Shown: positions 2,916-58,381 of the stretch, piece after piece
Position numbering within the stretch: the stretch's first letter is position 1
Layout: each line of letters opens with the position of its first letter
Assembly: GCA_965644295.1 (NCBI GenBank)
Contig: CBFFRP010000025.1
Span: 62,001 to 126,000 of the forward strand
Source of the DNA: Paraphysomonas bandaiensis
Lineage: Eukaryota; Protista; Chrysophyceae
DNA: 64,000 nt
Direction of reading: 5' to 3'
Notes under the pieces: model-generated
Seen by the model: only the letters and a program-made list of their open reading frames with translations
Databases searched by the model: none
Told to the model about the DNA's origin: nothing
Position numbers and translations under genes: made by a program

Positions 2916-3439
2916 TAATGAAAGTCTTATTATTAGCAATAGACGTTAAAAACCTGCACCAACTTAGTAGCTAGATGAATCCTAGACAAACTAGTTAGAC
3001 CTCTACTCGTAACTAGTAACTAGACAAACTAGTTAGACCTCTACTCGTAACTAGTAACTAATCAGTACACACTTTTTTTATCCTACTATTTAACGCTACG
3101 AAAGCTGCTTGTGCGTCGCGGCAAGCACCAAGGTGCAACCACTTCCGTTCTGAGTCCTTAAGGTGAACATCCAGGATGCTTGGCTTCAGCAGGCAGCCCA
3201 ATACCCCGGTTACCCTTGAGGTGGGCCCATTCCCGGATGCCTGTTTATTCGTCTGGGCCCAAAAACGTCTACACAAGTGACACTTATTGGTGTCCCTCGT
3301 ACCACACAAGCATTCGGCTATGAGTGAGCAGAAGAATATCTGCTGACTATGTTTGCGGCTCACGTTAGTTTCCCAGAGAGAGAATATCTTTTATCTTATC
3401 CCCCAGAACACCACGAAAAGGGTCCGACTTTGTTGATGG
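2916..3439 (-). mobile_element. CCCTCAAC retroposon-like element, copy A (near full length, small deletion in 5' motif)
   Basis: Aligns with the copies at 31614 and 36465. Imperfect TSD AGATGACAT (2906-2914) / AGATGGCAT (3440-3448). Internal 38-bp tandem duplication at 2982-3057. Confidence 0.85.
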
Positions 3440-4819
3440 AGATGGCATAAATTGTAATATATAATGCTACAAGAGTTAGAATTTTATTGGAAGTAATTTC
3501 GACTAGTGGAAATGGTGTTTACTGGAAGTAAATTCTCAACGAAAGAACTTTCATGTGTGATCGGCAAGTGGTGCGTGTTGCATGGTGAGGTGCTCCATTG
3601 GTAACAAATGAGATATATCGCACATCCAATCTCTACAGTTTCTGGCCTGTTGAGTTTGTAAGGTATACTGTGAAATCTAGTGTCGGTCGTGGTGCAGCGT
3701 AGGTACTATTAGACACTACCAACTTTAATACACTACCAACAGCGACGAAACAGGGTACTGTAATTCTCTACAATGTCACACGGCTGCACAGTTGGATCGG
3801 TCTATTGCGGAGGAAGTCACAGCTTTTATGTAGAATAGCAACTGCGGAGCTGCCGATACGAATGTTTTTGCTCCTGACTGTACACACATACAGAAGCCGT
3901 AGACCATGCAGAAGTCATTATGGTATCGGCAGAGCCCAGAGTGAGTGGGGTCATCTGAAACTCCTCTAGTGCTATTGCTCGCTTGCAATAAGAGTGTGTT
4001 TGAGTATATTAGTACAATTGAAAAGTAGTAGTTGGATTTGAAGAGAAAATCAAATATTATCAATAGCTTTGTTAGATAACATGGATGGAATTTCGCAGTA
4101 AAAAGATAGTCACCAGTATACTGCTGCACAATGGCAACCCTTCGATATCAGACCCAACTGCAGAGAAATCGTCGCCAATAACGTGGGTAACGTTCAACAC
4201 AGGGCCAAGGCAGTCTATGTAGTATCGATTTCAGCGAGTTCTTCGCTCCCCCTTTTACTATAATGAACCATTTTCCTTGCAATGTCAATATTACCTTGAA
4301 CCTGCTCTATAATCTGAAGAGTTGCAGAAGAGAGGAGAATAGGAACCCTTTACTGGCGTTATTCATGGGGCTTCATTATTAACTGAGTATGTCAATGAAA
4401 TTAACTCGTGATACCAAACCATTATCAATATCTTATTACGGAGTTCTGAATCATGCTCAGTCACATCCATTACACCACCAGAGGGGATTGCATGCAATGC
4501 ATGTTACCACTTAGGATGCAAACATATTCAACAAAACTAGAAATTGATTTTCAATGACGTGTAGTAGTCTATGGTCGAATATATATGTGGAAAGCAATCA
4601 GCTGAGCATCTTATCTGAGTTAAGTAGTAGTCTAACACAATGCATCAGTGTGCATTGGAGTCAATCTGCACCAGATTAAGCAACAGGAGGATCTTCATCC
4701 AATCATATCGCCGATTCCAGAATCTGTTGGCTAATATTACCTATCATGTATTTTAGTATGTATTGTGGCGGTATTCTGTGTATGAATGAGAGTAACGGTT
4801 TCATGTGTGTTGCAACCAA

Positions 4820-4915
4820 CAGATACATACATACATACACGTACATACACATACACATACACACACAATGCCATATACACACATACACACACACGTACAT
4901 ACATACACATACATC
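4820..4915. repeat. degenerate (CA/TA)-rich microsatellite
   Basis: catacatacacgtacatacacatacac... upstream of CFAP77; source of spurious ORFs. Confidence 0.85.
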
Positions 4916-5002
4916 GACATGTGCATCTATACTTGCAGAGAGGAGTGACTAGTCGTGTATATAAGACACATTGTATTGCTGCTAATTGATAAATTGAAGA
5001 CA

Positions 5003-6835: not shown

Positions 6836-7210
6836 CCTCTAATCACTCAAAGCAAACGCAATTGTGAGTGAGCAGATTGCTTTGGTAACTCATATCTGCT
6901 CACTTCAGGATTTTGAATTCTGAAGAGGTGAACAACCCGGATGCTTGACTTCAGCAGGCAGCGCAATACTCCGGTTACCCTTGAGGTGGGCCCATTCCCG
7001 GATGCCTGTTTATTCGTCAGGGCCCGACGTGACACTTATATTGGTGTCCCTTGTACCACACAAGCATTGGGCTATGAGTGGGCAGAATATTATCTGCTGA
7101 CTATATATTATATATGCGGCTCGCGTTAGTTTCCTGGACTAATACCTTCGGTACTTATCCACTAGAATTTAGAACACCACGAAAAGGTACGAGTCCGACT
7201 GTGTTGAAGG
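6836..7210 (-). mobile_element. CCCTCAAC element copy C (long variant, 3' part missing)
   Basis: Matches the family through agaacaccacgaaaaggtacgagtccgactgtgttgaagg and carries the extra ~75-bp segment. Confidence 0.85.
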
Positions 7211-7763: not shown

Positions 7764-10490
7764 TCATTGATTTTTCTTTTTCGCAGCAGATTCTGCTAAC
7801 TTTATTTCTTGATACTTCTCGTCGTACACTGTAAATATCACTGCCAGAACCATATTCAGTAGTATAAAGGAAATAATAACAACGAACGACCAAAAGAATA
7901 TTGCCGTCTCCACAGGACTCACTTCACGAACTACAAAATATAGGAAACGTATTAACTCGTCAGAAATAAATATATCAAACTTACGTCTATAGTACTCTCC
8001 ATACTCCCCAAGCATCATAATAAAGAGCGATGCCAAAGAATATCCCAAGTTCGACCACTCTGACAACTCGGAGCCGTAGATTTCAGTCCCGAGTACTCCA
8101 TAAGCCACAGCAATCACAACAAATATGAGTAGCACCGGTAACAAGTCACTAGCTGACCCTGTTATGGTAGCAGTCACAATACCAAGTTTCCTGTCAAATG
8201 ATAAATATCGAAAGAATTGTATCATGCCAGCAAACATCGCAGCAATAGCAATCAGATGAAGAGTCTCACCGATGCTGCTAATATGTCTAAAATCCTCCAG
8301 AATACTCTCCAAATGATCATCCAGATCTGACGAACCTTCCAATTTCAAGAAAGTATTGTGCAACGCGGCACCTGAAGTGATGTAGCGTACACGATAAACA
8401 ATTCCCACTGATATAACAACAATTGTAACCCAGTCCAGTATATCGTGCATGCCGGCTTGGTCAGGCAAAATATCATCAAATATATCCTCTATGGCTTCTC
8501 CGATGTCATCTACAAGATCATCCAGTTTATCGGCAATGTCGGTGTTAGATTTAGTTCGCTCAGGTTTTGTGGTATTGTGTGGCATATTATTCAAATCCCC
8601 ACCCAAAAGACCCGTTTCTATTCCTCCTGGTACACTACGCGCTACATTATGATCTACACTTCTAATCTCTTCGTCATTTATCGGAGGCTGAGTTACGTCA
8701 CAACACTTAGCCGACTTGACGTTATCACAAGGATCAGTGGGATGCACTGAACCTTTACAAGCTCTCTTTACACACGGAATAACACGAATCAGTCGTCTGG
8801 TAATGAGCTGGTATATCTCTCTCAGTGTGAACAAAGTGAAAACAATAAGCAGCATAACTTCCAGAACAAACACTTCTGTTGTGCGCCACTCGTATCCATC
8901 GTAGCCGTAAAAGAACTGAATCATTGGGACGAATGTTGTATCCACAGTTGCTGAGATGGCACCGTCTGTTCGGATGTTAAACTGAACTCTTATCATTGTG
9001 TAAAACAAATCTTCATTGCCCAAGTTGCGCGTTACTATATACACTCTAAATATCCTCGTGTTTTTATCAATAAAATTGTGCTCCCGAAGTAGTAGAGTGC
9101 CCTGTGCAGAGTCTTCAATCCATTCCTCTTGATTAGTGGTAGAGAAAAATAAGCCATAAGATTGCTCCCCTACCAGGTAAGAGTCCAACGTCTTTCGAGC
9201 CTCCACAAATGTTGTATCCATAGCATTCACTGGGAAGGACGTCAACTTCACACACCCGAAGTATACGTTATATAATTCCGCCACATCATTGAAACCAGCG
9301 ATTCGTGCTAAATAGCCAAAAATTGCACTTGGTTGTATATCTGCGAGATTAAGACAAGCTACTCGTATGTCGTACGACGAAGACACCCATCGATAAGAGC
9401 AATCTGTAAGCTCTATATCGTCAACATTCCCAGTGTATGAACTATTTCCCGGAAGAAGTACTAGAGACTCCTGCTCAGACACTCGGTCAGATAACGTCCT
9501 TGATAAAGTTGCCAGAGAGGACCTGGATCCTGGTGGACCGGGAGGTGTTCCTGAAGGTGTGGGCGACGGTGTCGGTGCCACAGTCATATCAGGCGGCTTT
9601 TTCTCATCCTCCGTTGATGAGTCCGTGTAGGCATAGCAAGGTTTTACTTCTTGCGGTCCATTCGCGTTGGAAAAAAGTACAACGGAAGAGTCAAGCCGAT
9701 AGGCGTATGTACCATCTATTACCTGTCCATCCCAGCCAAACGTCGACCCCGCTTCTCCTCTGAATCCATCCTTGTGAAGGCAATATGATCCCCAAGGTGG
9801 AGTGCATGTCTCAATTATTTTATCGTCCTTGGTGGGATTCAGGGGCTCAATAGTGCTACTTCTCACCTTGATATCATTTTCGCTTTTCACCGACTTTTTA
9901 ACAGGGAACTTAGGCACAGATCTTTCCGTGAATATCCCAAAAGATAAAATCATATGATTTCCAGTTAGAAAGACTGCCTCATGATCTCCTTTAATATAGC
10001 CAATGCTACCATCAGAGCATGCATTGGTATTGACACTGGGGTTTAGCAACGAATATCGCACACCGTCTATTTCCACCTCCTGATAATTAGGCGAAGGATA
10101 TCTGCAGTTCGCATTAATATGATCGACAGTTTTGCCACCTATTCCGGTGGTGACGTCATTGACCCACTGCCATATGTCGTCTACAGTGGTAGCTGCTTTA
10201 GCTTGATCACTTCTTACAGCATGCAACAACGATGTACGACTGCTAGTATAGCGATACGGTTGTTGCTGTGTATATATTGTAGCCATCAACACACAAAAAC
10301 AAAACATCATCATTACAGCGTGTATATAACCATAGTATAACTTTCTCTTCTCGACTGATGCATTGTCAACAGCTGATATTTTTGTATGAGGATGTAATAT
10401 AGTTTGTAGACCACGTGCTATACCGTATAGAGTGTGAGTACGGTCATTCTCTTTGCTGATACCGTTCATACCGTTCATAGGTATTGACAT
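7764..10490 (-). CDS. polycystin-2-like (TRPP/PKD channel) cation channel
   Basis: One N-terminal TM, a very large loop, then S2-S6 with DILDW, QFFRYLSFDRKLGIVTATI, AYGVLGTEIYGSELSEWSNLGYSLASLFIMMLGE and FILLNMVLAVI. First ATG at 10490. Probable in-frame intron at 7931-7984. Confidence 0.85.
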   Translation of the reverse strand: MSIPMNGMNGISKENDRTHTLYGIARGLQTILHPHTKISAVDNASVEKRKLYYGYIHAVMMMFCFCVLMATIYTQQQPYRYTSSRTSLLHAVRSDQAKAATTVDDIWQWVNDVTTGIGGKTVDHINANCRYPSPNYQEVEIDGVRYSLLNPSVNTNACSDGSIGYIKGDHEAVFLTGNHMILSFGIFTERSVPKFPVKKSVKSENDIKVRSSTIEPLNPTKDDKIIETCTPPWGSYCLHKDGFRGEAGSTFGWDGQVIDGTYAYRLDSSVVLFSNANGPQEVKPCYAYTDSSTEDEKKPPDMTVAPTPSPTPSGTPPGPPGSRSSLATLSRTLSDRVSEQESLVLLPGNSSYTGNVDDIELTDCSYRWVSSSYDIRVACLNLADIQPSAIFGYLARIAGFNDVAELYNVYFGCVKLTSFPVNAMDTTFVEARKTLDSYLVGEQSYGLFFSTTNQEEWIEDSAQGTLLLREHNFIDKNTRIFRVYIVTRNLGNEDLFYTMIRVQFNIRTDGAISATVDTTFVPMIQFFYGYDGYEWRTTEVFVLEVMLLIVFTLFTLREIYQLITRRLIRVIPCVKRACKGSVHPTDPCDNVKSAKCCDVTQPPINDEEIRSVDHNVARSVPGGIETGLLGGDLNNMPHNTTKPERTKSNTDIADKLDDLVDDIGEAIEDIFDDILPDQAGMHDILDWVTIVVISVGIVYRVRYITSGAALHNTFLKLEGSSDLDDHLESILEDFRHISSIGETLHLIAIAAMFAGMIQFFRYLSFDRKLGIVTATITGSASDLLPVLLIFVVIAVAYGVLGTEIYGSELSEWSNLGYSLASLFIMMLGEYGEYYRRKFDIFISDELIRFLYFVVREVSPVETAIFFWSFVVIISFILLNMVLAVIFTVYDEKYQEIKLAESAAKKKNQ

Positions 10491-10745
10491 CACGTGTTTC
10501 AATGATTTCCTGGGAGGATATGATCTATTACTGTATGAGATTACGCAGGGTACTCATGTTCTTCCTCTACTTCACCCCCCAGACCTGAAAGTAACAGGGA
10601 TTTCACCCTGGTTATGTACTGTATGTCTCATATTTACTTTAAGACTGAGTGAGTTGTGGTGAAGGTCTGTGTATGTATCTATAGGCAGACACAGCTGCTC
10701 CCTACCTGCTGCTACTGCTGTCTGATATTCTGAAAGTGGACTTCG

Positions 10746-11295: not shown

Positions 11296-14258
11296 ATGAA
11301 CACAGTATTCCTGCTTATATATTTTATTATTACAATTCCGTTGTATGGATGTGTTCCTCCTTCTGATGTCAATATCGGTGTGGTGTTTAATTTACAGAAT
11401 AGCTCAGGCGGAGTCAACTATTTGGGTGTGCAGTGTAAGGAGGCCATTTTAATGGCATTAAGAGAAGTGAACAATAAATCAGATGGTCTTTATGACGATA
11501 TTTTACCATTGACTGAATTAAAAATTGCTTTTGCACCACATGGTTATTCGTATGCTAGTGCCGCTACAGCCACCAGCAACCTTGCTAAATCGTTTAGCAA
11601 TATGGGAGTCCGCGCTACTGTTGGGCCTGACACTAATATTGGAATTGAAGGTTTTAATCAATTCATGTCTTCTTGTTTTTCTTAACTCTGTTACAGGTTC
11701 GGCAAAGATTTTGGCGGAACAAGGAGCTCTGCTTGTCGCCTACCAAGGTGATAGTGACGATCTTGCTCTTCCGGAGCCATATCCCAATTTTGTTCGGACG
11801 AATCCTGCAGCTGGTCTGCAGGCAACTACTTTAGCTTCTTTCGTATACAACACCTATGGCTGGGAGCGGGTTGCAATTATTCACTCGTATTCTGTCTGGG
11901 GTTACCATATGCAGATTAGATTTGTAGATGAATTTCAAAATATCGGTGCCAGTGGCTTCTGGACCAAAACAGACTTTGCCTCAGGAGATTATGAAACTCT
12001 TGTGAAATCAGTTCGGGCTACAGGGGCCAATATATTTGCTGTTTTTATCGATGACCCGGCTGATATGGCTGCTCTTCTGAAAGCTGGTTGGAAATATGGA
12101 TTGTTTGGCGAAGGTACTCACATTGTGGCCACAGAAGCTGCTACCACTCCTGAGGTATGGCAGCTGCTTGATGATGGAGAGATGACAATAGAGGATATCG
12201 CGAAGGTTATGAAGGGATTCTCCGCGATTCGAGATATGGTGCGTAAATCAGATCCTGTGGCATCAGAATTCGTATCACGATGGAGACAGCAAGCTTCCAC
12301 ATGTGGTTTGGATGGGGCATGTGACTCTACTACTGATGATGATGGCAATTTCTTACATCAATATACTATTGACAACGTTACTACTTGCGCTGGGCTCAAT
12401 TTCACTGAATTTTCTCCTGATGGCTCAGATATTGATGCAGCAGCAATGTATGCGTACGATGCTATGATTCTATTAGCTAAAGGATTTAATTCTCTGCTTC
12501 ATGGTGCATATTCATCTCTTGGCATATCGCATCAGCTGCAAATCAATTTCTATTACCTTCAATTGGCTCTGGATTACGTAGTTAACGATGGTGTAACGGG
12601 AACTTTCCAGCGTCCCAGCTTTCTTACTCGTGGTACCAATGATCGAATGTCCAACATTGCGTATGCACTCTTTACATTCGATCCTGATCTATTTCTACGT
12701 GTGTCTCGGGAAACCATGTCCGCTGCTGATGTAGGCCTGGTATACACGGGTACACTAGACTCCTCTTCTTCTGTGTTCGAACCCTGTACAGGTGACTCTG
12801 TAGTGGCGGCAATGTGCGAGACTCAGTTGTACCCCAGTCATATTACATGTGCATGTTCGGACATTATATATGACACTTCAAACAATTTACCTCCCATGGA
12901 TCGCCCACATGTATCAACAGTCAGTTTACATATCGGCATGGCTGCGTTTCTGTGGGTTGTTTCAGCATTGTGCTTGATAGCCGTATTAGTTTCGTTTTCA
13001 TTCATGGTTTATTACAGCAAAACTAGGCTGGTGCGGATATTGCAGCCAGAGTTAGTGTATATCATTCTCCTGGGTGGTGTATGCTCTTCGATTACAGGAG
13101 TGCTAGCTTCACTGGAAGCTAGTACAGGACTATGTATTGCTCTCAATGTCATGTGTCACTTGTCGTTCATCCTTATATTTAGTCCTCTTCTGGTGAAAAC
13201 ACTTCGAATATATGTGGTTCTTAATTCAGGTTTTCAACGAAAGAAAATATCCCTGCTGCAAACATTATTATGTGTGGTTATAATACTTGCTATTACTGTG
13301 ATCCTCCTATCGTTGAGTGTGTCGTATGTCTGGTCTGAAGATTACGATTATACTATGATTGAGGACAACCAGTTCGAGAGGACGCGGGCAAAGACATGCC
13401 CATATATGATGCACGACCCAGCGATTGCGTTATTGGCATTCGAGACACTTGTTTTGCTTGGAGGTGTATATATGTGCTACATAACACGCGATATGCCCGC
13501 TGGTATCAGTGATGCCAAGCAAGTGGCAAACGGTATGATATATTTGCGCATTGTTGTGTGCCTAATATTAGCTGCAGCGATATTCGGAATTATCTTGTGT
13601 TGTATGGTGGGCGTTCCCCTATACTTACTTGTCAATATGACACCCTACGAGTCAAGGTTTCTTCTAGGACTTTTGCTCGTTTTGGGCGCGACAAGATCTA
13701 TAGTAGTATTGTATTTTCCGGTTTTGTGGAAGCTTCTACAGGTCAGTTGACGATTTCTAGTGAATACTTGTTAATTCTACATCGTAGGGATATGATTTGG
13801 ATAAATCGTTTAAATTGGTAGAAGTTAGGCCGCCCGCTTCGTAAGTAGTATGTTCGTATTGTCTTATCTTGTAGTAACCCAGTTTCAGATTTTCGTGTGC
13901 GAAATTGAGTATATATCCCGGTTCGACGAGCAGCCGCAGTACCACAGATGAAAGTGGGAAATCCCAACCTGAGCCCAATGCAAGTCTGACCAGGACAATG
14001 ACTGCTGTCGCAGAAATGGCGAGAATCGAAGCTGAAATTGACACTTTAAAGCAGCGCCTGGAGCTTCTGGCTAATCGGGCGCTTCACCATGAAGCTATAT
14101 CAACACGTCTTCATGAAGTTTCTGAGGTTCATGTTACCAGTGGCCACAGATCAATGAAAAGATCTTTAGATCGTCCATTTGAAGATTGTGACAAGGAGGT
14201 AGAACAGCTAGAAGATATTGATGAAGATGAAACTCTTTCCAGCCCAGATCACGTATAG
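11296..14258 (+). CDS. class C (GABA-B-like) GPCR-like protein: signal peptide, Venus-flytrap/ANF domain, 7TM, C-terminal coiled coil
   Basis: Motifs AILMALREVNNK..ILP, YPNFVRTNP, YGWERVAIIHS and YAYDAMILLAKG. TM region has LVRILQPELVYIILLG and FSPLLVKTLRIYVVL; tail EMARIEAEIDTLKQRL. Introns inferred at 11651-11696, 13533-13577, ~13742-13787 and ~13841-13888. Confidence 0.85.
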
Positions 14259-14794: not shown

Positions 14795-15492
14795 TTATAT
14801 TGATAGTAGGGTGTGGGTAACCCTTTTGACCTTATCTTTGTTCCTAGTAGCCCTCAGTACTCAATATACGCTCTGAAATAGGATTTATATAAAGCTCTAG
14901 ACCAATCACCAGGGCTGGGTAACATGATCACTTATGTTGGTCATGATGAACAATGGGTTGAAAGTGGTAGTATAAGCAAGGGCAGATAACGGGGTTGCTG
15001 ATAAGCGAAAACGTGCTTCTGCTACATCCTACAGTAGTATAAAACTTAATATTATGTTAATAAATTAATATTTTTTGTTGTCCTTTGTTGCTTAATACCA
15101 CAAAAAGAGAATGTCTTCTTAAACATTTCTATGTAAATACTGTAAAATTTAATACTCCTAAAGTTTTACAAAATATCGTAAAATTTCCATGAAGATTACT
15201 TACAACATATATATGAACATATATATCGTTTGCATGAATATATATTCACTTAACACCTGATGAACATATTATATATGTTCTTCTCAGAAACATCTGTTTA
15301 TCATCTATCATATTATTATGTTCACCAGTCAGTCATTCCTATATCTTACATCTTATATATTATTATCATCACTAATTGAAATTACTTCCGTTTTTTGTAG
15401 CTATATTCCCCCAAAAATTATGAGTTGATTTCACGTATAGTGGTACTATTAATTCACTTCAATTGCACAGTATAGTATTATATCGATATATC

Positions 15493-15579
15493 CCCTCAAC
15501 AAAGTCGGACTCGCACCTTTTCGTGGTGTTCTGGGGGATAAGTACCGGAGATATTTCTCCGGGAAACTAACGTGAGCCG
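15493..15579 (+). ncRNA. candidate HDV-like self-cleaving ribozyme (Pr77-like hallmark) at the element 5' end
   Basis: P1 CCCTCAAC/GTTCTGGG (2 mismatches); P2 CGG(A)CTCGC/GTGAGCCG; P3 ACC/GGT; L3 TTTTCGT; P4 CCGGAGA/TCTCCGG; J4/2 GAAACTAA with candidate catalytic C at 15567. Confidence 0.6.
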
Positions 15580-15887
15580 CATATATAGTCAGCAGATATA
15601 TTGTTCTGCCCACTCATAGCCAAATGCTTGTGTGGTACAAGGGACACTAATAAGTGTCACTTGTGTAGACGTCTTTGGGCCCTGACGAATAAACAGGCAT
15701 CCGGGAATGGGCCCACCTCAAGGGCATCCGGGACAGGGCCCACCAGAAGGGTAATCGGGGTATTGGGCTGCCTGCTGAAGTTAAGCATCCGGGATGTTCA
15801 CCTTAAGAACTCAAAACACCTGAAGTCAGCAGATGTCAGGTATATATCAACATTCTGCTTGCTCCCTGCGTTTGCTTTGAGTGATTG
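15493..15887 (+). mobile_element. CCCTCAAC element copy D (long variant, intact 5' end)
   Basis: Starts ccctcaacaaagtcggactcgcaccttttcgtggtgttctggggg. Contains a 27-bp tandem duplication (15696-15749) and the extra segment (~15814-15886). Confidence 0.9.
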
Positions 15888-17369
15888 ATGCTGAGTATGA
15901 GTTCACATTATTCGGTATCTGTGTGGCCGGCCAATGACCGAGGTAATGCGTCAAACTCTCCTCATGGATGCATGGCAATGGCAATGATGTGATTAGACCT
16001 GTCATGTCTTCTCACACGTCTACTGCCTAGTCTTGGTTTCTCCTGACCCAGGTCATTGAGATTATATCAAGGCTCTGGCACTGTTCTCCAAGCAGTGTCA
16101 GGTACATTTGTGGTGCTTTTATGTTATTCTTGCTTAGTAGGTTTTCATCCGAGCGGGGAAGGTGCACGGTTTCCTACTAGTGTAAGTCACTCGGGAGAAG
16201 AGTGCAAGGTGGATGCATGTGCTGGATGAGTGCACACAATGGAGGGAAGACATTGGAGTCAGCTTGAATTTGTAACAGATTTTGGTAGATGTCTGTTTCA
16301 TGCGTCAGTGTGCAAAATTGCACCAGTGAGACCGCTTCGTGACCGTGGGAGGACCCGGCGCTAGAGCTACTTTATTCTCCCTTCCAGACTACCTGCTGCT
16401 GTGAACACCACCTTGAAGAGGGCCCTAAAGATCTGCCGCATATACAGGAGACATATGCCGAAGACACCGACCGCAAGTTGTTGTGTTAGGACAAGTAGAT
16501 TGGGCAGGAGCGTATGATCCGGCTTAAACACGCAACTCGTCGTATGCCCATGTAGCTAACTAAATCGTGTTGTATAGTTGAGCACTTGTCGGTGCATGCA
16601 ATAGTAACTAGATGAGAGTCATGTTATGCATAGTGTCGCGCGAGTTGTTAGGTTGGTCGCGGCAACGCACAAGCTTGCGCTTCTTAATAATCAGATTTTC
16701 AATTATATCGATATATCGTATCATGAAGCAAAAAGTCATTAAAGATTCACTTAATATTACGAAGTTTTCCATTTTGAATTGTAATAAATTCGTCCTGCGT
16801 ATCGCTCTCTAACCCATCTTGGTATTGATTCATGTCTTACTTCTTATTCCTACCCTGTTGCAGATCCAACTATAAAACACTACTCCCAGCTGGTTATCCA
16901 CCCATTTGACATCATACATCCCCGATTATGTGTCCCATCGGTAACGGTTCCAATATTATTCTTGTTAGGGAGAAACATTGCAGAGTCTCATGATTAGTGA
17001 CACTGATTTATCTGTCATGATTGGTTTTAGGAGAAATTTTGATGCTAATTATTTCTATTACACAGAAAACTTGAGATATAGCTAACTACTATTATTATAG
17101 TGTACCCTAAAAGTATAGCTCATTGTTTTAAGAATACATAAGACGCTCCCTGTCTTATATCATTGATGACTGTTAAGATTCAGCAAAAGACGAACGTGTA
17201 CCACGCTACAGTAGCTTTTTACGACAACAAGGACCAGGGCATAAAATCTAAAGTAGCGTCTTTGATTTCCATGTGTTGAGCCCTACGGAATAGAATATGT
17301 TAACTAACCCGGTGGACTAAAGCTATGTATATATAATTTATCTTTGGAACTGATATATTATATAGTTAC

Positions 17370-18867: not shown

Positions 18868-18988
18868 TACAGTAGTTGAGATATGAGGAGTGTCTATCTG
18901 CTGTGTACTATATGACTATATGCGGTATGGACCCTCCCGTCCACCTGAATGATGAGCTCACTCTACCCCCCTATACACTATACACCAT

Positions 18989-19200
18989 CATACATACATA
19001 CATACATACATACATACATACATACATACATACATACATACATACATACATACATACATACATACATACATACATACATACATACATACATACATACATA
19101 CATACATACATACATACATACATACATACATACATACATACATACATACATACATACATACATACATACATACATACATACATACATACATACATACATA
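18989..19200. repeat. perfect (CATA)53 microsatellite
   Basis: Uninterrupted CATA run between two divergent genes. Confidence 0.97.
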
Positions 19201-19505
19201 CAGAGGTATACCATACCTGGCTGGTATATGTACACTATGCATACGGTACACGGTACGTAGGTACGTACACAGCAGTGCATGCAGTGGTGTGGCAGAGTAG
19301 CTAACTACACACACCTGCTCTGGCCAATCATGTATCGTTTTTTGGCATTCATTCGCAGATACTTACACACCATGTGAACGGCTTGGAGTGCCTACTCACC
19401 TTAACGTCTCGCGCTAGCTCATGTATCCTCATTTCATGCAAACTTCTATTTACATCATACTGCATAGGCAGTATACTCTCACCTAGAAGTTAACTCTGCT
19501 TTAGC

Positions 19506-26882: not shown

Positions 26883-27021
26883 CGTATCGGCAGTCAGCAT
26901 CATATTTTTCGGAAATAAATTGAAGCAAAAATTCTCTATATTACTGTGATACAACTACGGCTGGAATACACATAATTGTTGTCTCAATATTAGAGGCATC
27001 TTGGAACAAAAATATACAAAG
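26883..27021. repeat. ~138-bp dispersed repeat (also 56884-57022 and partial 56713-56799)
   Basis: cgtatcggcagtc..ttttcggaaataaattgaagcaaa..caactacggctggaatac..aattgttgtctcaatattagaggcatcttggaacaaaaatatacaaag. Confidence 0.85.
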
Positions 27022-27162
27022 GATGCACGACAGTGCAGTGCAGTGCTTCATGGAGTAACAGTGCAGAGGCATTATACCATACACTGCAAACAAAACACAA
27101 CTTGGAATTGTACACTATACATCCACTTTGTTTCCTTGTAAAGTGACGTGCAATTTCAAGCA

Positions 27163-31613: not shown

Positions 31614-32056
31614 CCCTCAACAAAGTCGGACTCGCACCTTTTCGTGGTGTTCTGGGGAATAACTACCGGAGAGATTATCTCTGGGAAACTAACGTGAGCC
31701 GCAAACATAGTCAGCAGATAATGGACATCTATAAGTGTCACTTGTGTAGACGTCTTTGGGTTCTGACGAATAAACAGGCATCTGAAACAGGGCCTACCTG
31801 AAGGGTAACCGGGGTATTGGGCTGCCTGCTGAAGTCAAGCATCCGGGATGTTCACCTTAAGAAATCAGAACGGAAGTGGTTGCACTTTGGTGCTTGCGGC
31901 GACGCACAAGCAGCTTTCGTAGCGTTAAATAGTAGGATAATAGAGTATGTACTGATTAGCTACAGGTAGAGGTTTAACTAGGTTGACTAGCATTTATCTA
32001 GCTACTAAATCGGTGCAGGCTTTTAACGCCTATTGCTAAATAAAAGACTCTCAATA
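31614..32056 (+). mobile_element. CCCTCAAC element copy F (both ends intact, short variant) with 13-bp TSD
   Basis: Starts ccctcaac and ends gactctcaata. Flanks TATATAATAGTCT (31601-31613) / TATATAGTAGTCT (32057-32069). Confidence 0.92.
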
Positions 32057-32948: not shown

Positions 32949-33644
32949 GGTGTACAAGTCAACAGAGTAGTGAGTGATATACGATTATTAACTATTATAG
33001 AATCTTGACAGCAATGCTCCTTGATGGTGCTGCTCCATGCATATACACAAGCATTTGGTGTCACTGCTGCTCGTTGTCCCAACTCACCACAACTTAACTT
33101 ACATCTAGACTTAATGGAAACTACCCGGACAAAATTAAGATTTCTTGTAATTTTTGAAAGGTGTATGGTAAAAAGCTCCATTTTTTCGACTGAAAAATGA
33201 TTTTATGAAAATTTTTGATGCGAAAGTACCGATTTTTACATGACAAAATTCTGTATACAATATACACAACTTCACACCTACAGCAGATCTAAAAAAAAGA
33301 TATGATCTGTATGTGTGTTATTGCGGGCAGAGATCCGTCAATACGGAGTGCAGCGTGTGTGTTATGATATGGAGTATGAGCTGAGGATGCGGGCGGGACG
33401 TAGTATATTTTTGTTCAAAGATGCCTCTAATATTGAGTCAACAATTATCTGTATTCTAGTCGTAGTTGTATTGCAGTAGTATAGATTAATTTTGCTTCAA
33501 TATATTCCCGAAAACGATTCTGACTGCCGATACGGATGTAAAGGATGATTTAGAGCATATGATACGAGCATTAGTTCACTTCACAGAGACTGAAGATCAC
33601 CATATATACACACCACCACCACCACCACCGCCACTACTAATAGA

Positions 33645-36124: not shown

Positions 36125-36464
36125 AGAGGGGATCTTTTGTTTGATGACTGAAGATTTCTTTCCCTTTGTATGTTCATATCGACAATCTTTCACTCGTATG
36201 TCAAGTATATATATCATACGTTGTCAGTGGTCCTGTGTATGTTTGCTGCAACAATAACAGCTGTTATCGGTGTAAGTCTGCCAGTGGCTGTCATTAACCA
36301 ACCACTTTGGGATATATAACACATTCTTAATAGCACATTTTATCATATATATAAATATCACCTCGCGAATATCTTATTGTTAGCAACAACTAATCGCAAT
36401 TTTCTACGAATTTCCCCTCTGATCTATCTTCGGTATCGCCGTCATCATCATATATTATATCGTA

Positions 36465-36918
36465 TATTGAAAGTCTTATTATTAGCAATAACTCCAACTT
36501 AGTAGCTAGATGAATGCCAGACAAACTAGTTAGACCTCTACCCGTAACTAATCAGTACACACTCTATTATCCTACTATTTAACGCTACGAAAGCTGCTTG
36601 TGCGTCGCCGCAAGCACCAAGGTGCGACCACTTCCGCTCTGAGTTCTTAAGGTGAACATCCAGGGTGCTTGGCTTCAGCAGGCAGCCCAATACCCCGGTT
36701 ACCCTTCAGGTGGGTCCTGTCCCGGATGCCTGTTTATTCGTCAGGACCCAAAGACGTCTACACAAGTGACACTTATTGGTGTCCCTTGTACCATACAAGC
36801 ATTCGGCTATGAATGGGCAGAAGAATATCTGCTGACTATGTTCGCGGCTCATGAGAATCTCTCCGGTACTTATCCCCCATAACACTACGAAAAGGTGCAA
36901 GTCCGACTTTGTTGAGGG
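36465..36918 (-). mobile_element. CCCTCAAC element copy G (both ends intact, short variant) with perfect 14-bp TSD
   Basis: TATATTATATCGTA at 36451-36464 and 36919-36932 exactly brackets tattgaaagtc...tttgttgaggg. Confidence 0.95.
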
Positions 36919-46445: not shown

Positions 46446-46870
46446 CAATAGGCGTCTAAGAGTCTGAACTAGTGTAGCGAAACAATTTAACTAACAATTT
46501 ACTATTTAGCGTTACGAAAGCTGCTTGTGCGTCACCGCAAGCACCAAGAGGTGCAACCACTTTCGCTCTCTCTGGCCTTCAGGCGAACTAGCCCGAATGC
46601 TTGAATTCAGCAGGCAGTCCACTACCCCTGATGCCCTTGAGGTGGGCCTATTCCCGAATCCTGTTTATTCGTCAAGGCCTAAAGGCATCTACACAAGCGA
46701 CACTTATATTTGTGTATCTGTTTGTGTGCTACACAAGCATTTGGCTATGAGTGGACACAATACTATCTGCTGACTATATATGCGGCTCAAGTTTGTTTCC
46801 CGGATAAATATCTCCTGTACTCTTATCCCCCAGAACACCACGAAAAGTGCGAGACTGACTTTGTTGAGGG
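46446..46870 (-). mobile_element. CCCTCAAC element copy H (diverged)
   Basis: caataggcg...gttacgaaagctgcttgtgcgtcaccgcaagcacc...cagaacaccacgaaaagtgcgagactgactttgttgaggg. Confidence 0.85.
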
Positions 46871-47049
46871 GAAGATAAAGCGAACAATTGGGAAGATGGC
46901 ATCCGTAGTGAATGTCTGATTATTAGCAATATGAAGTGAGTACGAGTCAGAAAACTAATGTAGCAAAACAGTATAACTACCTACTGCTTCACTCTGTTAT
47001 CCTACAATTTAGCGCTACGAAAACTGCTTGTGCGTCGCCGCAAGCACCA

Positions 47050-47184
47050 TATTGAAAGTCTTTTATTTAGCAATAGGCGTTAAAACCCTGCAACGATTTA
47101 GTAGCGAATCGTTTCCCAGGGAATCTCTCCGGTAGTTATCTCCCAGAACACCACGAAAGGGTGCGAGTCCGACTTTGTTGAGGG
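47050..47184 (-). mobile_element. 135-bp mini-element (5' end plus 3' end only) nested in an older copy, 12-bp TSD
   Basis: CCGCAAGCACCA at 47038-47049 and 47187-47198. Host fragment 46990-47049 belongs to the same family. Confidence 0.85.
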
Positions 47185-49524: not shown

Positions 49525-51339
49525 ATGTTGTTGCCAATTACAAGTAGTCTCCTTGCAGCTGATGCAGCATTCATTTATCTAAATAAGCTCCCTATTCCTC
49601 AGAGTATGGATGCTCTGATGAAATCCGATAAAGACTCGAAATTAGCATATGGAGGAGCCATTGCTCTTGGAAGCATCACTGGTATCCTTCTTGTTAACAA
49701 AATGTTTGGAACGGATCCTATTGGCCGTACATGGGAAATGTTTAAGGTCTATATATAGTGAACTGGATCTTATGAGTGTAGTGATGTATGTATGTATATG
49801 TGCTGTAGGTGTTTCTTCGTCAGGAGAAAACAAGAAATATTAAAGTAGACGAGTGGATAGATAAATACAACGATCTTCATGATGATAACAAAGAGGGTGT
49901 TGATGCCCGTAATTCCTCGTACACAACACTGGTCAACTCTTACTATGAGTTGGCTACTCTGTTTTACGAGTGGGGATGGGGCCAGTGCTTCCACTTCGCC
50001 TATAAACTCAAAGGCGAGTCCTTCAAAGAGGCTGTTGCACGCCATGAGTACTATCTTGCCGGCAGACTGGGTGTCCGTGAGGGAGATAAAATTCTAGATG
50101 TAGGTTGCGGCATCGGTGGTCCAATGAGGAATATCGCAAGGTTCACACGTGCCGAAGTCACCGGCATTACCTTGAATGAATACCAGGTCCTCCGCGGTAA
50201 TGAGCTCAACAAAGCTGCTGGCCTCACGGGACGAGCCCTCTCTGTGCAAGGGGATTTTATGAAGCTCCCTTTTGATGCCGAATCCTTCGATGGCGTGTAT
50301 GCTATTGAGGCCACATGCCACGCTCCTAGGAGACAGGAAGTATACGGCGAGATCTTCCGTGTTCTTAAGCCTGGACAGGTTTTTGCTACCTACGAGTGGT
50401 GTCTAACCCCTCACTATGATGGAAATAATGAGACCCACCGATTGATTAAGAAGAAGATCGAGGAAGGTGACGGGCTTCCGGACATGGCCACACAAGAGGA
50501 ATGCGTACAGGCCCTTCGTGACGTTGGATTCGAGGTCAGATACCTTCTATTTTTTTGCATGTTATGTTTTCTGTTCATGTATGAGTCCTGTGAAGATATG
50601 ATATTCTGTGTTATCGTCCTGATAGAATTATCTTGTGACGACACCATATATCTGACGGACAGTGATGTGATGCACTTACTATATGAATATGAATTCAATT
50701 TATCTAATGCGTTTCGTGTCCAATGAAGATATGATATTCTGTGTTATCGTCCTGATAGAATTATCTTGTGACGACACCATATATCTGACGGACAGTGATG
50801 TGATGTACTTACTATATGAATATGAATTCAATTTATCGAATGCGTTTCGTGTCCAATGAAGATATGATATTCTGTGTTATCGTCCTGATAGAATTATCTT
50901 GTGACGACACCATATATCTGACGGACAGTGATGTGATGTAATGTGCTATCTACATGTACGATCAAACGAAAAATAAATTATGATCGAACTGTTATGTAGA
51001 TTGTTGAGGCCCGCGATGCTGCTCTTGATCAAACCTTTGGTGGCGAGCCCTGGTGGATGCCCCTACACCCTTCTCCTAATCCCTTTTCTTTCCGCTTCCA
51101 GATGCACCCTGTTGGGAAGTTCTTTATGCGCAATATTCTGTGGACTTTGGAGTGCATATGGTAATGCGTCCTATTTGTATCGAGAAGAAAAGATAACTTT
51201 TGTGTATAGGCTTGTTCCTTCTGGCACATACAAGGTCGAGGAAATGCTTCAACAGGGTGGCTGGGGATGTGAGCGTGGCGGCTATACCGGTATCTTTACC
51301 CCAATGTACCTTATGGTAGCACGCAAGCCTCTAAAATAA
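49525..51339 (+). CDS. SMT1: sterol C24-methyltransferase (SMT1/ERG6 family)
   Basis: LVNSYYELATLFYEWGWGQCFHFA, RHEYYLA, LDVGCGIGGP, YAIEATCHAP, YEWCLT, IEEGDGLP and GIFTPMYLMVARKP*. Confidence 0.95.
50591..50940. repeat. 133-bp tandem repeat (~2.6 units) inside an SMT1 intron
   Basis: Units start at 50591, 50724 and 50857 (tgaagatatgatattctgtg...) and are nearly identical. Confidence 0.95.
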
Positions 51340-56572: not shown

Positions 56573-56712
56573 TTACTTGAATATCTCACTCACAGAGGGT
56601 TAGGGAATGATACATATGGCTATACGGAGTACCATAACAGAGCCTCAGCTTAATAGTCACACCACTGGATCTCTCTATAGAGAGCGAGTGCTACTGTTCC
56701 TAGCTACGATTC

Positions 56713-57022
56713 TTTTTTCGGAAATATATTGAAGCAAAATTCCACTATATTACAGTAATGCAACTACGGCTGGAATACAGAGAATTGTTGTCTCAATATT
56801 TCCTCAAGTCGATGTTGTTTTTTATCAATATAAAATGGATATAGTTCCTAAAAAGGTTGATTTATTAGTCTGATCGACAATTTCGTATCGGCAGTCTGCA
56901 TCTTAGTTTTCGGAAATAAATTGAAGCAAATATACTCTATATAACTGCAATACAACTACGACTGAAATACAGAAAATTGTTGTCTCAATATTAGAGGCAT
57001 CTTGGAACAAAAATATACAAAG
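56713..57022. repeat. one partial and one full copy of the ~138-bp dispersed repeat
   Basis: 56713-56799 and 56884-57022 match 26883-27021. Confidence 0.85.
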
Positions 57023-58381
57023 AATGCCGATACGTTCCACATCATATCAACACATAAAAGTGGTGTTTTTTGAGTGATACAAACATCCGCCCTAACAAAA
57101 ACACACACTGCTCTTCTCAGCTCAACCAACCCGCCCAAAGATTCGAAAGATGATGATATCCATATAAAGATAGCAGTAACATCTGAAGGTAGATAGTAAT
57201 GGTTGAACACTGAAGATAGGGAGGGGGGAGGGAGGAGAGCCCCTCCCCTCACTCCATCTGTATATATACATATGACTATGCAGATATATACTCCTCATTA
57301 AGCGATAAATGAGATCAGATATGAGGGCTGTGGGTAGTAATACATCATTAGACAGTAAAGTTCTGTAGAATGTGATCCGTATGTGAGGTTGCACAGATGT
57401 CATAAGACAGTCCTGTCACTGTACAATGGGTCGTAAACTGTGTAACTCCTCAGAGTATGTATGTTCTCTACATGAGCAGATACAGTGAAGGAGAAGACTG
57501 ACTATGCGTGTGAATAGCCTGTCAAAATGAAGGAGTTAGTTGTAGTCTGCTCTAACATGTAATGGTACCTCTCTAGATCATGTACATTGTCGACTACTTT
57601 TAGAAGAGAAAGTACAATAAATGTTTATATAAAGTAAGATATTCTGTACTATTTTGAATTAATCTATTGAAAATCAACTGAAATCATTGTTCTATGTCCA
57701 GTACTAGTTCAAAATGATGCCATTGCAAGTGATCTATCTTCATAACTAGGACTTCGAAGCAATACTCCAAGAATTCTATAATCTTTCACTTGCTCTCCTA
57801 ATGTCAATCCGGAAAACCAATTTCTCAAGCAATATTCATATCTATACATTCATGCATTATAATATTAGTTTTTAACATCAAGAGAATAAGGACTATCGCT
57901 GCTCATCCTTTTATCAAATTTGAACCGTGGGCTTTCATTACAAGGGACGAAGTACATTACATAAACTGCTCTTTGGATTCATTACGTATGCATGTTGTGG
58001 TAGTATTGAAGAGATATGTTATGAAACCGATGTGTCAATTTAATAATGTAGGATGTGGATCTAGTAGGGAGTTCTATACGTTTTGGAGAAGAACATGATC
58101 ATATCAGTGATAAACAGCATATTACTCTTAGCAGCCAATTGAACTTGATTCATGTCATCACTGTATTACTAAATCACTACATATCTCACTTTGAACCACA
58201 AATTCTACGCTACAATGTCCAATCACTACACAGTAACTACAGGCAACTACAGATGCTTCTACACTAGCAAAGGAGAATATCCACCCGACGATACAATCGC
58301 GAGCATGGACGTTATTCTACGCTGTGGTGCAGCATCAGTACGTTGTTATATATACAAAAGAATTGACGGATGGAAATTACA

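Follow-up and report, generated by a model that had tools for sequence, protein, structure and literature searches.

Features of the window

The window, meaning the whole 64-kb stretch of DNA that was analysed, contains host ORFs for an MFS sugar-transporter fragment (431–1273), a polycystin-type cation channel (7764–10502) and a family-3 GPCR with an ANF-receptor domain (11525–13750). Long arrays of an 8-bp tandem repeat are located at 4794–4945 and 18933–19240, and three tandem copies of a 133-bp unit (50585–50983) lie inside or beside the ORF at 49809–50726. A dispersed repeat of ∼110–145 bp is present in direct and inverted orientation (26883–27026, 33403–33515 and 56692–57027) and is unrelated to the retroposon described here, of which the following copies were identified.

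15493–16704, + strand: complete 1.2-kb non-coding retroposon, with the 13-bp duplication ATATCGATATATC at 15480–15492 and 16705–16717
36451–36918, − strand: short form, ∼0.47 kb, with the same head; a deletion removes the 3′ strand of P4, and the 3′ half is LINE-derived
31614–31701, + strand: head of another short-form copy, matched by covariance model R1 (26.8 bits, E 2e-4)
46783–46870, − strand: decayed head copy (copy alignment, R1 search)
7117–7210, − strand: decayed head copy with an insertion within the 3′ strand of P1
3352–3439, − strand: decayed copy of the head that has lost 5 nt of P2
47049–47184, − strand: mini-element of 136 bp, internally deleted, single copy, with its own duplication GGTGCTTGCGG

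Copies, forms and boundaries of the retroposon

The 8-mer CCCTCAAC was found exactly at 15493 (+), 31614 (+), 36918 (−), 46870 (−) and 47184 (−), that is, five times against 1.25 expected in the window; the copies at 7210 (−) and 3439 (−) are headed by CCTTCAAC and CCATCAAC, respectively, each a one-mismatch variant. When the seven window copies were aligned, this motif marked the exact start of similarity; upstream of it the flanks were unrelated. The same switch of flank directly before the first C was seen in 30 of 30 further copies fetched from the genome, and the observation in an earlier note on this DNA, that copies retaining their 5′ end begin abruptly at the 8-mer or a one-mismatch variant of it, was thereby confirmed for 7/7 window and 30/30 genomic copies. 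A perfect target-site duplication of 11–15 bp abuts the first C in 14 of 16 full-length 1.2-kb copies; at the other end of such copies the duplication resumes 0–4 nt past ...CAGATTTTCAAT.

The genome examined comprises 669 contigs with a total of 62.5 Mb. A search with the 87-nt head yielded 1,933 first-look candidates, at least 35 copies being 100 % identical, and a loose pattern drawn through the head core matched 693 times, compared with 65 matches for the reversed control; the family numbers at least about 700 genomic copies. It occurs in two forms of 1.2 kb and roughly 0.5 kb, and all of 40 heads sampled genome-wide belonged to one or the other. For the body of the 1.2-kb form, ∼238 first-look candidates were obtained, at least 40 of which are 99–100 % identical and therefore point to a recent burst of this form. 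The first ∼279–320 nt are common to both forms. Beyond that point the short form continues with ∼190 nt that match the 3′ end of a LINE at roughly 90 % identity, and the tail of the 1.2-kb form resembles the LINE tail only over the last ∼20 nt. A genome-wide search for a second family with the core at canonical spacing yielded none; all that it returned were six deletion variants of the present one. At 2959–3069 a short-element tail contains a ∼38-bp unit (TAGTTAC..GGTCTAACTAGTTTGTCT), the copy number of which varies among copies.

In the mini-element at 47049–47184 the head up to about J4/2 is fused to the terminal ∼50 nt of the tail, and the whole is inserted inside an older copy of the same family. 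That it represents a family spreading without P2 was considered and rejected because it is a single copy in the genome; it is best explained as a template jump in reverse transcription.

Partner LINE and chimeric build

A LINE of ∼9.4 kb is located just upstream of the window (G000:C25:47930–57340) and encodes SET, Exo_endo_phos and RVT_1 domains. The copy lies nested in a 1.2-kb element. At least 40 genomic 5′ ends of the LINE, varying by a few bases, are 99–100 % identical, which marks the LINE as young. It starts with ..AATTCTCTGCCCTACGATGG in 12 of 12 copies, each with unrelated flanks, and in none of these twelve was a ribozyme-type head found at the 5′ end. Among the 40 heads sampled from the genome, none was carried by a LINE. 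The expectation that the head forms part of an ingi/L1Tc-like LINE and of its truncated derivatives was contradicted by these twelve headless copies. A pol III SINE with a tRNA-, 7SL- or 5S-derived head was also considered and rejected: ARAGORN detected no tRNA-like gene in the window, and there was no Rfam match.

The family has SINE-like traits, namely a LINE-derived tail and target duplications. Given this tail, a partner LINE devoid of the head and a head that is not tRNA-like, the family is a LINE-dependent, SINE-like, non-coding non-LTR retroposon, the head of which did not come from the partner. The retroposon is a chimera of a ribozyme-type head and a foreign LINE tail.

Predicted structure of the head

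The segments of the head in the copy at 15493–16704 are listed below; all are on the + strand.

15493–15579: HDV-like ribozyme-type head, predicted to be cut 5′ of C15493 (R1 model positions 1–76; Pr77-derived descriptor)
15493–15500: P1 5′ strand (CCCUCAAC); 15493–15498 pair with 15537–15532, and 15499–15500 with 15529–15528
15506–15513: P2 5′ strand CGG[A]CUCG, A15509 bulged; pairs with 15573–15579
15514–15528: core CACC-UUUUCGU-GGUG; P3 15515–15517/15525–15527, L3 15518–15524; CGTG at +30..+33
15528–15537: P1 3′ strand GU[UC]UGGGGG; 15530–15531 bulged (Infernal: 15530–15532 unpaired)
15538–15544: J1/4 AUA, then AGUA; three bases before AGUAC, as in six metagenome families and L1Tco
15545–15562: P4 hairpin of 7 bp with loop UAUU (−13.1 kcal/mol)
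15563–15572: J4/2 GAAACUAACG with candidate catalytic C15567; GAARCUAA is common to L1Tc/L1Tco and all relatives
15573–15579: P2 3′ strand UGAGCCG, aligned with P2 of the relatives and beginning 2 nt after CUAA

Helices P1, P2, P3, P4 and P1.1 can all be drawn in the canonical HDV order. The fold departs from the canonical one in that P1 has a bulge of 2–3 nt, P2 a bulge of 1 nt, and P1.1 just one pair, for which U15520 (L3 position 3) can pair with A15538. C15567 lies within GAAACUAA, which is present in all relatives and in L1Tc/L1Tco; the letter was fixed by the search pattern, and a catalytic role is suggested by position only. Most segments drawn in the earlier note were recovered where it had placed them (P2 at 15506–15514/15572–15579, P3 as ACC/GGT, L3 as TTTTCGT, P4 at 15545–15562 and J4/2 as GAAACTAA), P1 being the exception. 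That helix had been drawn as 15493–15500/15528–15535 with two central mismatches; the mismatches (T.T and C.C) are indeed there in this register, but a shift by two bases gives better pairing. In the shifted register the pairs are C1-G45, C2-G44, C3-G43, U4.G42, C5-G41 and A6-U40, followed, after the bulge at 15530–15531, by A7-U37 and C8-G36. The two J1/4 purines that had been described as opposite the T residues of L3 both become P1 bases in this register.

The spacing from GGU to AGUAC is 13 nt in this head compared with exactly 10 nt (7 of P1 and 3 of J1/4) in the relatives and in L1Tc/L1Tco. Both MAFFT and Infernal placed the three extra bases inside the 3′ strand of P1, aligning, for example, UGGGGG-AUA-AGUAC of the head with CUAGGG-ACA-AGUAC of a relative. 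The minimum free energy (MFE) structure and the centroid from ViennaRNA both adopt the shifted register, with an energy of the nested part of −20.7 kcal/mol versus −18.7 kcal/mol for the register drawn before. A subfamily with UUCUCGU as L3 would form a C-G pair as P1.1 in the latter and a C.A mismatch in the shifted one, a point that speaks for the register drawn before. P1 probably takes the shifted register, with eight pairs and a 2-nt bulge, and the two registers may exchange because of the run of five G residues. P1 is irregular in both registers, and doubt about activity stems chiefly from this. The top covariance-model matches in the genome were searched for a subfamily with a better P1 and proved to be single mutated copies only. 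Plain MFE folding of the nested part was no more stable than that of shuffled sequences (z=−0.76), as is expected for a pseudoknot.

Comparison with Pr77

The head was compared with L1Tc and L1Tco by a short IUPAC descriptor and by eye. L1Tc +27..+77 was taken from primers in PMC3185411, L1Tc +1..+15 from PMC4748587, and the whole L1Tco head from the supplement of PMC4035085. The descriptor, which has 25 fixed letters and was written only from these trypanosome sequences, matched once in the window against none in 100 shuffles, and 362 times in the genome against none for the reversed control. Its single window match lies at the head, and all 25 letters match in order; the Pr77 layout given in the earlier note was correct. 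The unpaired core is identical to L1Tc/L1Tco letter for letter, comprising CACC-U...CGU-GGUG with a 7-nt L3, AGUAC opening P4, and GGAA(G/A)CUAA after P4; P1, P2 and P4 differ in sequence.

Metagenome relatives and covariation

When the Pr77-derived descriptor was applied to public metagenomes, 15 loci (L074–L088) in six unrelated families were retrieved, and the six have the core of CACCUnnnCGUGGUG, AGUAC and GGAARCUAA in common. A stretch of 7 nt upstream is complementary to the 7 nt after GGU and forms P1 with them, perfectly in five families and with one mismatch in the sixth. P2 is formed by 6–9 nt before CACC with a stretch that starts 2 nt after CUAA, and P4 closes on the C of AGUAC. 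P1 of the relatives is thus a perfect or near-perfect helix of 7 bp, contiguous with P3. In multi-copy metagenome families the flanks diverge exactly at the first base of P1. Loci L084, L085 and L078 have CCCCATC in common and their flanks part directly before it; several relatives head dispersed repeats. The ORFs downstream of the metagenome heads, on contigs that are short, showed neither endonuclease nor RT domains.

The core letters common to the relatives, including those flanking L3 that are invariant in all of them, were imposed by the search pattern. Segments were anchored only on this invariant core, and pairing partners were permuted among families as a control. Pairing in P1 amounted to 47/48 against a permuted mean of 27.7, the 5′ strands of the metagenome P1 having been located by complementarity, and that of this genome having been fixed independently by the insertion boundary. 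For P2 the result was 47/48 against 26.0. P1.1, taken as L3 position 3 with the first base of J1/4, was paired in 8/8 cases as U-A, C-G or G-C, to which L1Tco adds A-U (by eye). Among the relatives only, 97.3 % of cells were paired compared with 70.4 % in shuffles (0/500 reached the observed value), 15 of 21 pairs were changed on both sides, and slid partners were 36–55 % paired. With five heads of this genome added, 96.5 % of cells were paired compared with 68.5 % in shuffles, and the sole systematic failure in the rows from this genome was the column of the bulged A15509. The relatives show strong covariation for the same predicted fold in P1, P2, P4 and P1.1.

Covariance model and Rfam searches

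Covariance model R1 was built from seven metagenome sequences only. It recovered a family left out of training at 55–56 bits, and in the window it matched 15493–15579 over model positions 1–76 with 37 bits and E 8e-7, the first base of the match being the first base of the element. The relatives themselves score 55–89 bits. No Rfam family reached the gathering threshold anywhere in the 64-kb window, and a search of 15440–15640 (201 nt) at E 10 returned unrelated families at chance level and none of the HDV-like ones. Agreement of the head with an HDV-like model was obtained end to end with the relatives-only model and not with Rfam.

A metagenome relative, L084:127–202, aligned with the RF02682 model over its full length and exactly where the ribozyme had been predicted; with 22.9 bits (E 0.013, 151 nt searched) the match stays below the gathering score of 44 bits. 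The consensus of RF02682, the HDV-like family of F. prausnitzii, includes CACaCCUCUaCGUGGuG ... GCUAAGA; the part of the head's core found in it is CACCUCUaCGUGGuG and GCUAAGA. In view of this consensus and of the L084 match, the core words are taken, from sequence comparison, as the sign of a broad HDV-like subclass that spans bacteria, trypanosomatids and environmental eukaryotes, and not of descent from ingi/L1Tc. The core had been put forward as a hallmark of the Pr77/ingi clade, which does not hold, since it also occurs in several unrelated environmental families and in part in RF02682. Likeness in the core therefore does not discriminate membership of Pr77, and kinship with the trypanosomatid elements does not follow from it.

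Constraint and transcription

All heads in this genome belong to one sequence family, and covariation among them is weak. In an older subfamily G15513 is replaced by A, by which a G.U pair of P2 becomes A-U; the subfamilies differ in P4 by two G-C to G.U changes and one added pair. At the subfamily level all differences in the head keep pairing, and within the genome they are one-sided only. The covariation that had been asked of the genomic copies was seen for P1, P2, P4 and P1.1 across the metagenome families and only weakly inside this genome. Between old and young 1.2-kb subfamilies the head is 91–95 % identical and the body 55–87 %; between the two forms the values are 97–98 % and 92–94 %. 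Old or young, every subfamily retains the irregular head without change.

Contigs from poly(A) metatranscriptomes (two studies) and from runs of two labelled organisms gave depth that spans 15493–16704 and is zero in the flanks; no variants at 10 % or above were listed for 15493–15551, and some RNA contigs run over the 5′ junction into other flanks. As the data are contigs, from which RNA ends cannot be read, and as carry-over of repeat DNA would look the same, they are weak evidence that the element is transcribed.

Proposed function of the head and alternative explanations

On its sequence the head is assigned to the HDV-like class, L1Tc type, with an irregular P1. It is proposed, with a probability of about 0.68, that it is a self-cleaving ribozyme that sets the 5′ end of the element. 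The cut is predicted at the 5′ base of P1, exactly where the target duplications set the element boundary. Copies would be transcribed, most likely within longer host or read-through transcripts; the head would fold into the nested double pseudoknot P1/P1.1/P2/P3/P4 and cut just 5′ of C15493, C15567 in J4/2 being the candidate general acid/base by its position. The cut would give the element RNA a defined 5′ end, and the 3′ tail would recruit the reverse transcriptase of the active SET/endonuclease/RT LINE. Target-primed reverse transcription to the last RNA base would then yield full-length insertions; the duplications of 11–15 bp that abut the first C are observed.

The explanation that survives best beside it, although it is clearly less probable, is that the head is a decayed or crippled HDV-like relic that cleaves inefficiently and is kept for another purpose, such as stabilising the RNA, assembling the RNP or recognising the template as reverse transcription ends. 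It would account for a P1 that, with its 2–3 nt bulge or two mismatches, is unlike that of every relative, for the bulged P2, for a covariance-model score of 37 bits where relatives reach 55–89, and for the lack of an Rfam match to the head; some trypanosomatid Pr77 copies are moreover reported to have lost activity (PMC4035085). The same irregular head is, however, kept in all subfamilies and stands at the front of a burst of 99–100 % identical copies with exact 5′ ends, which is hard to reconcile with a relic if nothing sets that end.

Somewhat less probable again is that the head acts mainly as a Pr77-like internal promoter for RNA polymerase II, with transcription starting at C1 and the conserved letters serving as DNA sites that bind proteins, the CGTG downstream element among them, or as promoter and ribozyme at once, as has been proposed for L1Tc. 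Pr77 of L1Tc reportedly combines both activities and contains an essential CGTG at +25..+28 (PMC4748587); this head has CGTG at +30..+33, and a promoter would account for the sharp 5′ boundary as well as for the conserved head. The conserved letters nevertheless lie in the unpaired core while P1, P2, P4 and P1.1 covary, a signature of RNA structure and not of a DNA site, and a promoter alone leaves the complementarity of the first six bases to 15532–15537 unexplained. That the fold is drawn by chance onto the 5′ end of an ordinary repeat, with a coincidental likeness to Pr77, can be set aside as very improbable: the nested MFE is no better than that of shuffles and Rfam gives no match, but 25 core letters are found in the right order (362 matches in the genome versus none for the control, and 0/100 window shuffles) and an independent model with E of about 1e-6 starts exactly at the element boundary.

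Significance

That the 5′ ends of retroposons are set by HDV-like ribozymes is already known from L1Tc/NARTc/SIDER and R2/SIDE. What is new here is that the host belongs to another lineage, that the element is a chimera whose partner LINE has no ribozyme, and that P1 is bulged; we know of no described HDV-like ribozyme with a P1 bulged like that of this head. The L1Tc-type core is extended to a stramenopile, and the metagenome relatives make the ‘Pr77 words’ the mark of a widespread ribozyme subclass instead of a hallmark of trypanosomatids. The element is a clean natural case of a non-autonomous retroposon built from a ribozyme-type head and a foreign LINE tail, and its irregular P1 is useful for gauging the distortion tolerated by the HDV fold. 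More tentatively, and with the odds somewhat against it, ribozymes with CACCUnnnCGUGGUG, AGUAC and GGAARCUAA may be a widespread portable 5′ module of retroposons in unrelated eukaryotes, captured here by a promoter-less SINE-like parasite of a ribozyme-less LINE and working with a bulged P1.

Comparison with known systems

In Schistosoma, Sm-alpha is a non-autonomous retroposon that bears a hammerhead. The element described here resembles the Schistosoma retroposons in being short and non-coding, with a small self-cleaving ribozyme, of which the cleavage is here predicted, in place of a pol III promoter; the ribozymes of the Schistosoma retroposons belong to other classes, twister and hammerhead. 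Twister-variant non-autonomous retroposons occur there with Perere-3/SR3 (PMC8501958).

In R2 and R2 SIDE of insects, an HDV-like ribozyme sets the 5′ end of the LINE RNA, which is cut from a co-transcript (PMC3414825). R2 SIDE is similar to the present family in that short non-autonomous derivatives keep the ribozyme (PMC3414825). In contrast, the ribozyme of R2 sits in the autonomous element, the insertion of R2 is specific for the 28S gene, and its ribozyme core differs in sequence (PMC4035085).

RF02682 (drz-Fpra-1 of Faecalibacterium prausnitzii) has the same core words in its consensus, and a metagenome relative of the head matches its full model. It is, however, bacterial and located away from retroposon 5′ ends, and the head in the window lies above E 10 against it.

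The closest likeness is to the L1TcRz/Pr77 hallmark of the L1Tc, NARTc, L1Tco and SIDER elements of Trypanosoma (PMC3185411, PMC4035085). In both systems the motif occupies the first ∼77–87 nt of a non-LTR retroposon, non-autonomous derivatives included, starts with C-rich CCCU and contains the core CACC-U...CGU-GGUG, AGUAC and GGAARCUAA; both have a 7-nt L3, a 3-bp P3 and a P1.1 that can be drawn as a single pair, as the L1Tc paper describes. The host here is, in contrast, a stramenopile, the helices are of other sequence, and P1 is irregular, with three additional bases separating P3 from AGUAC. NARTc and RIME are truncated forms of L1Tc and ingi, whereas the autonomous partner LINE of the present family is without the head.
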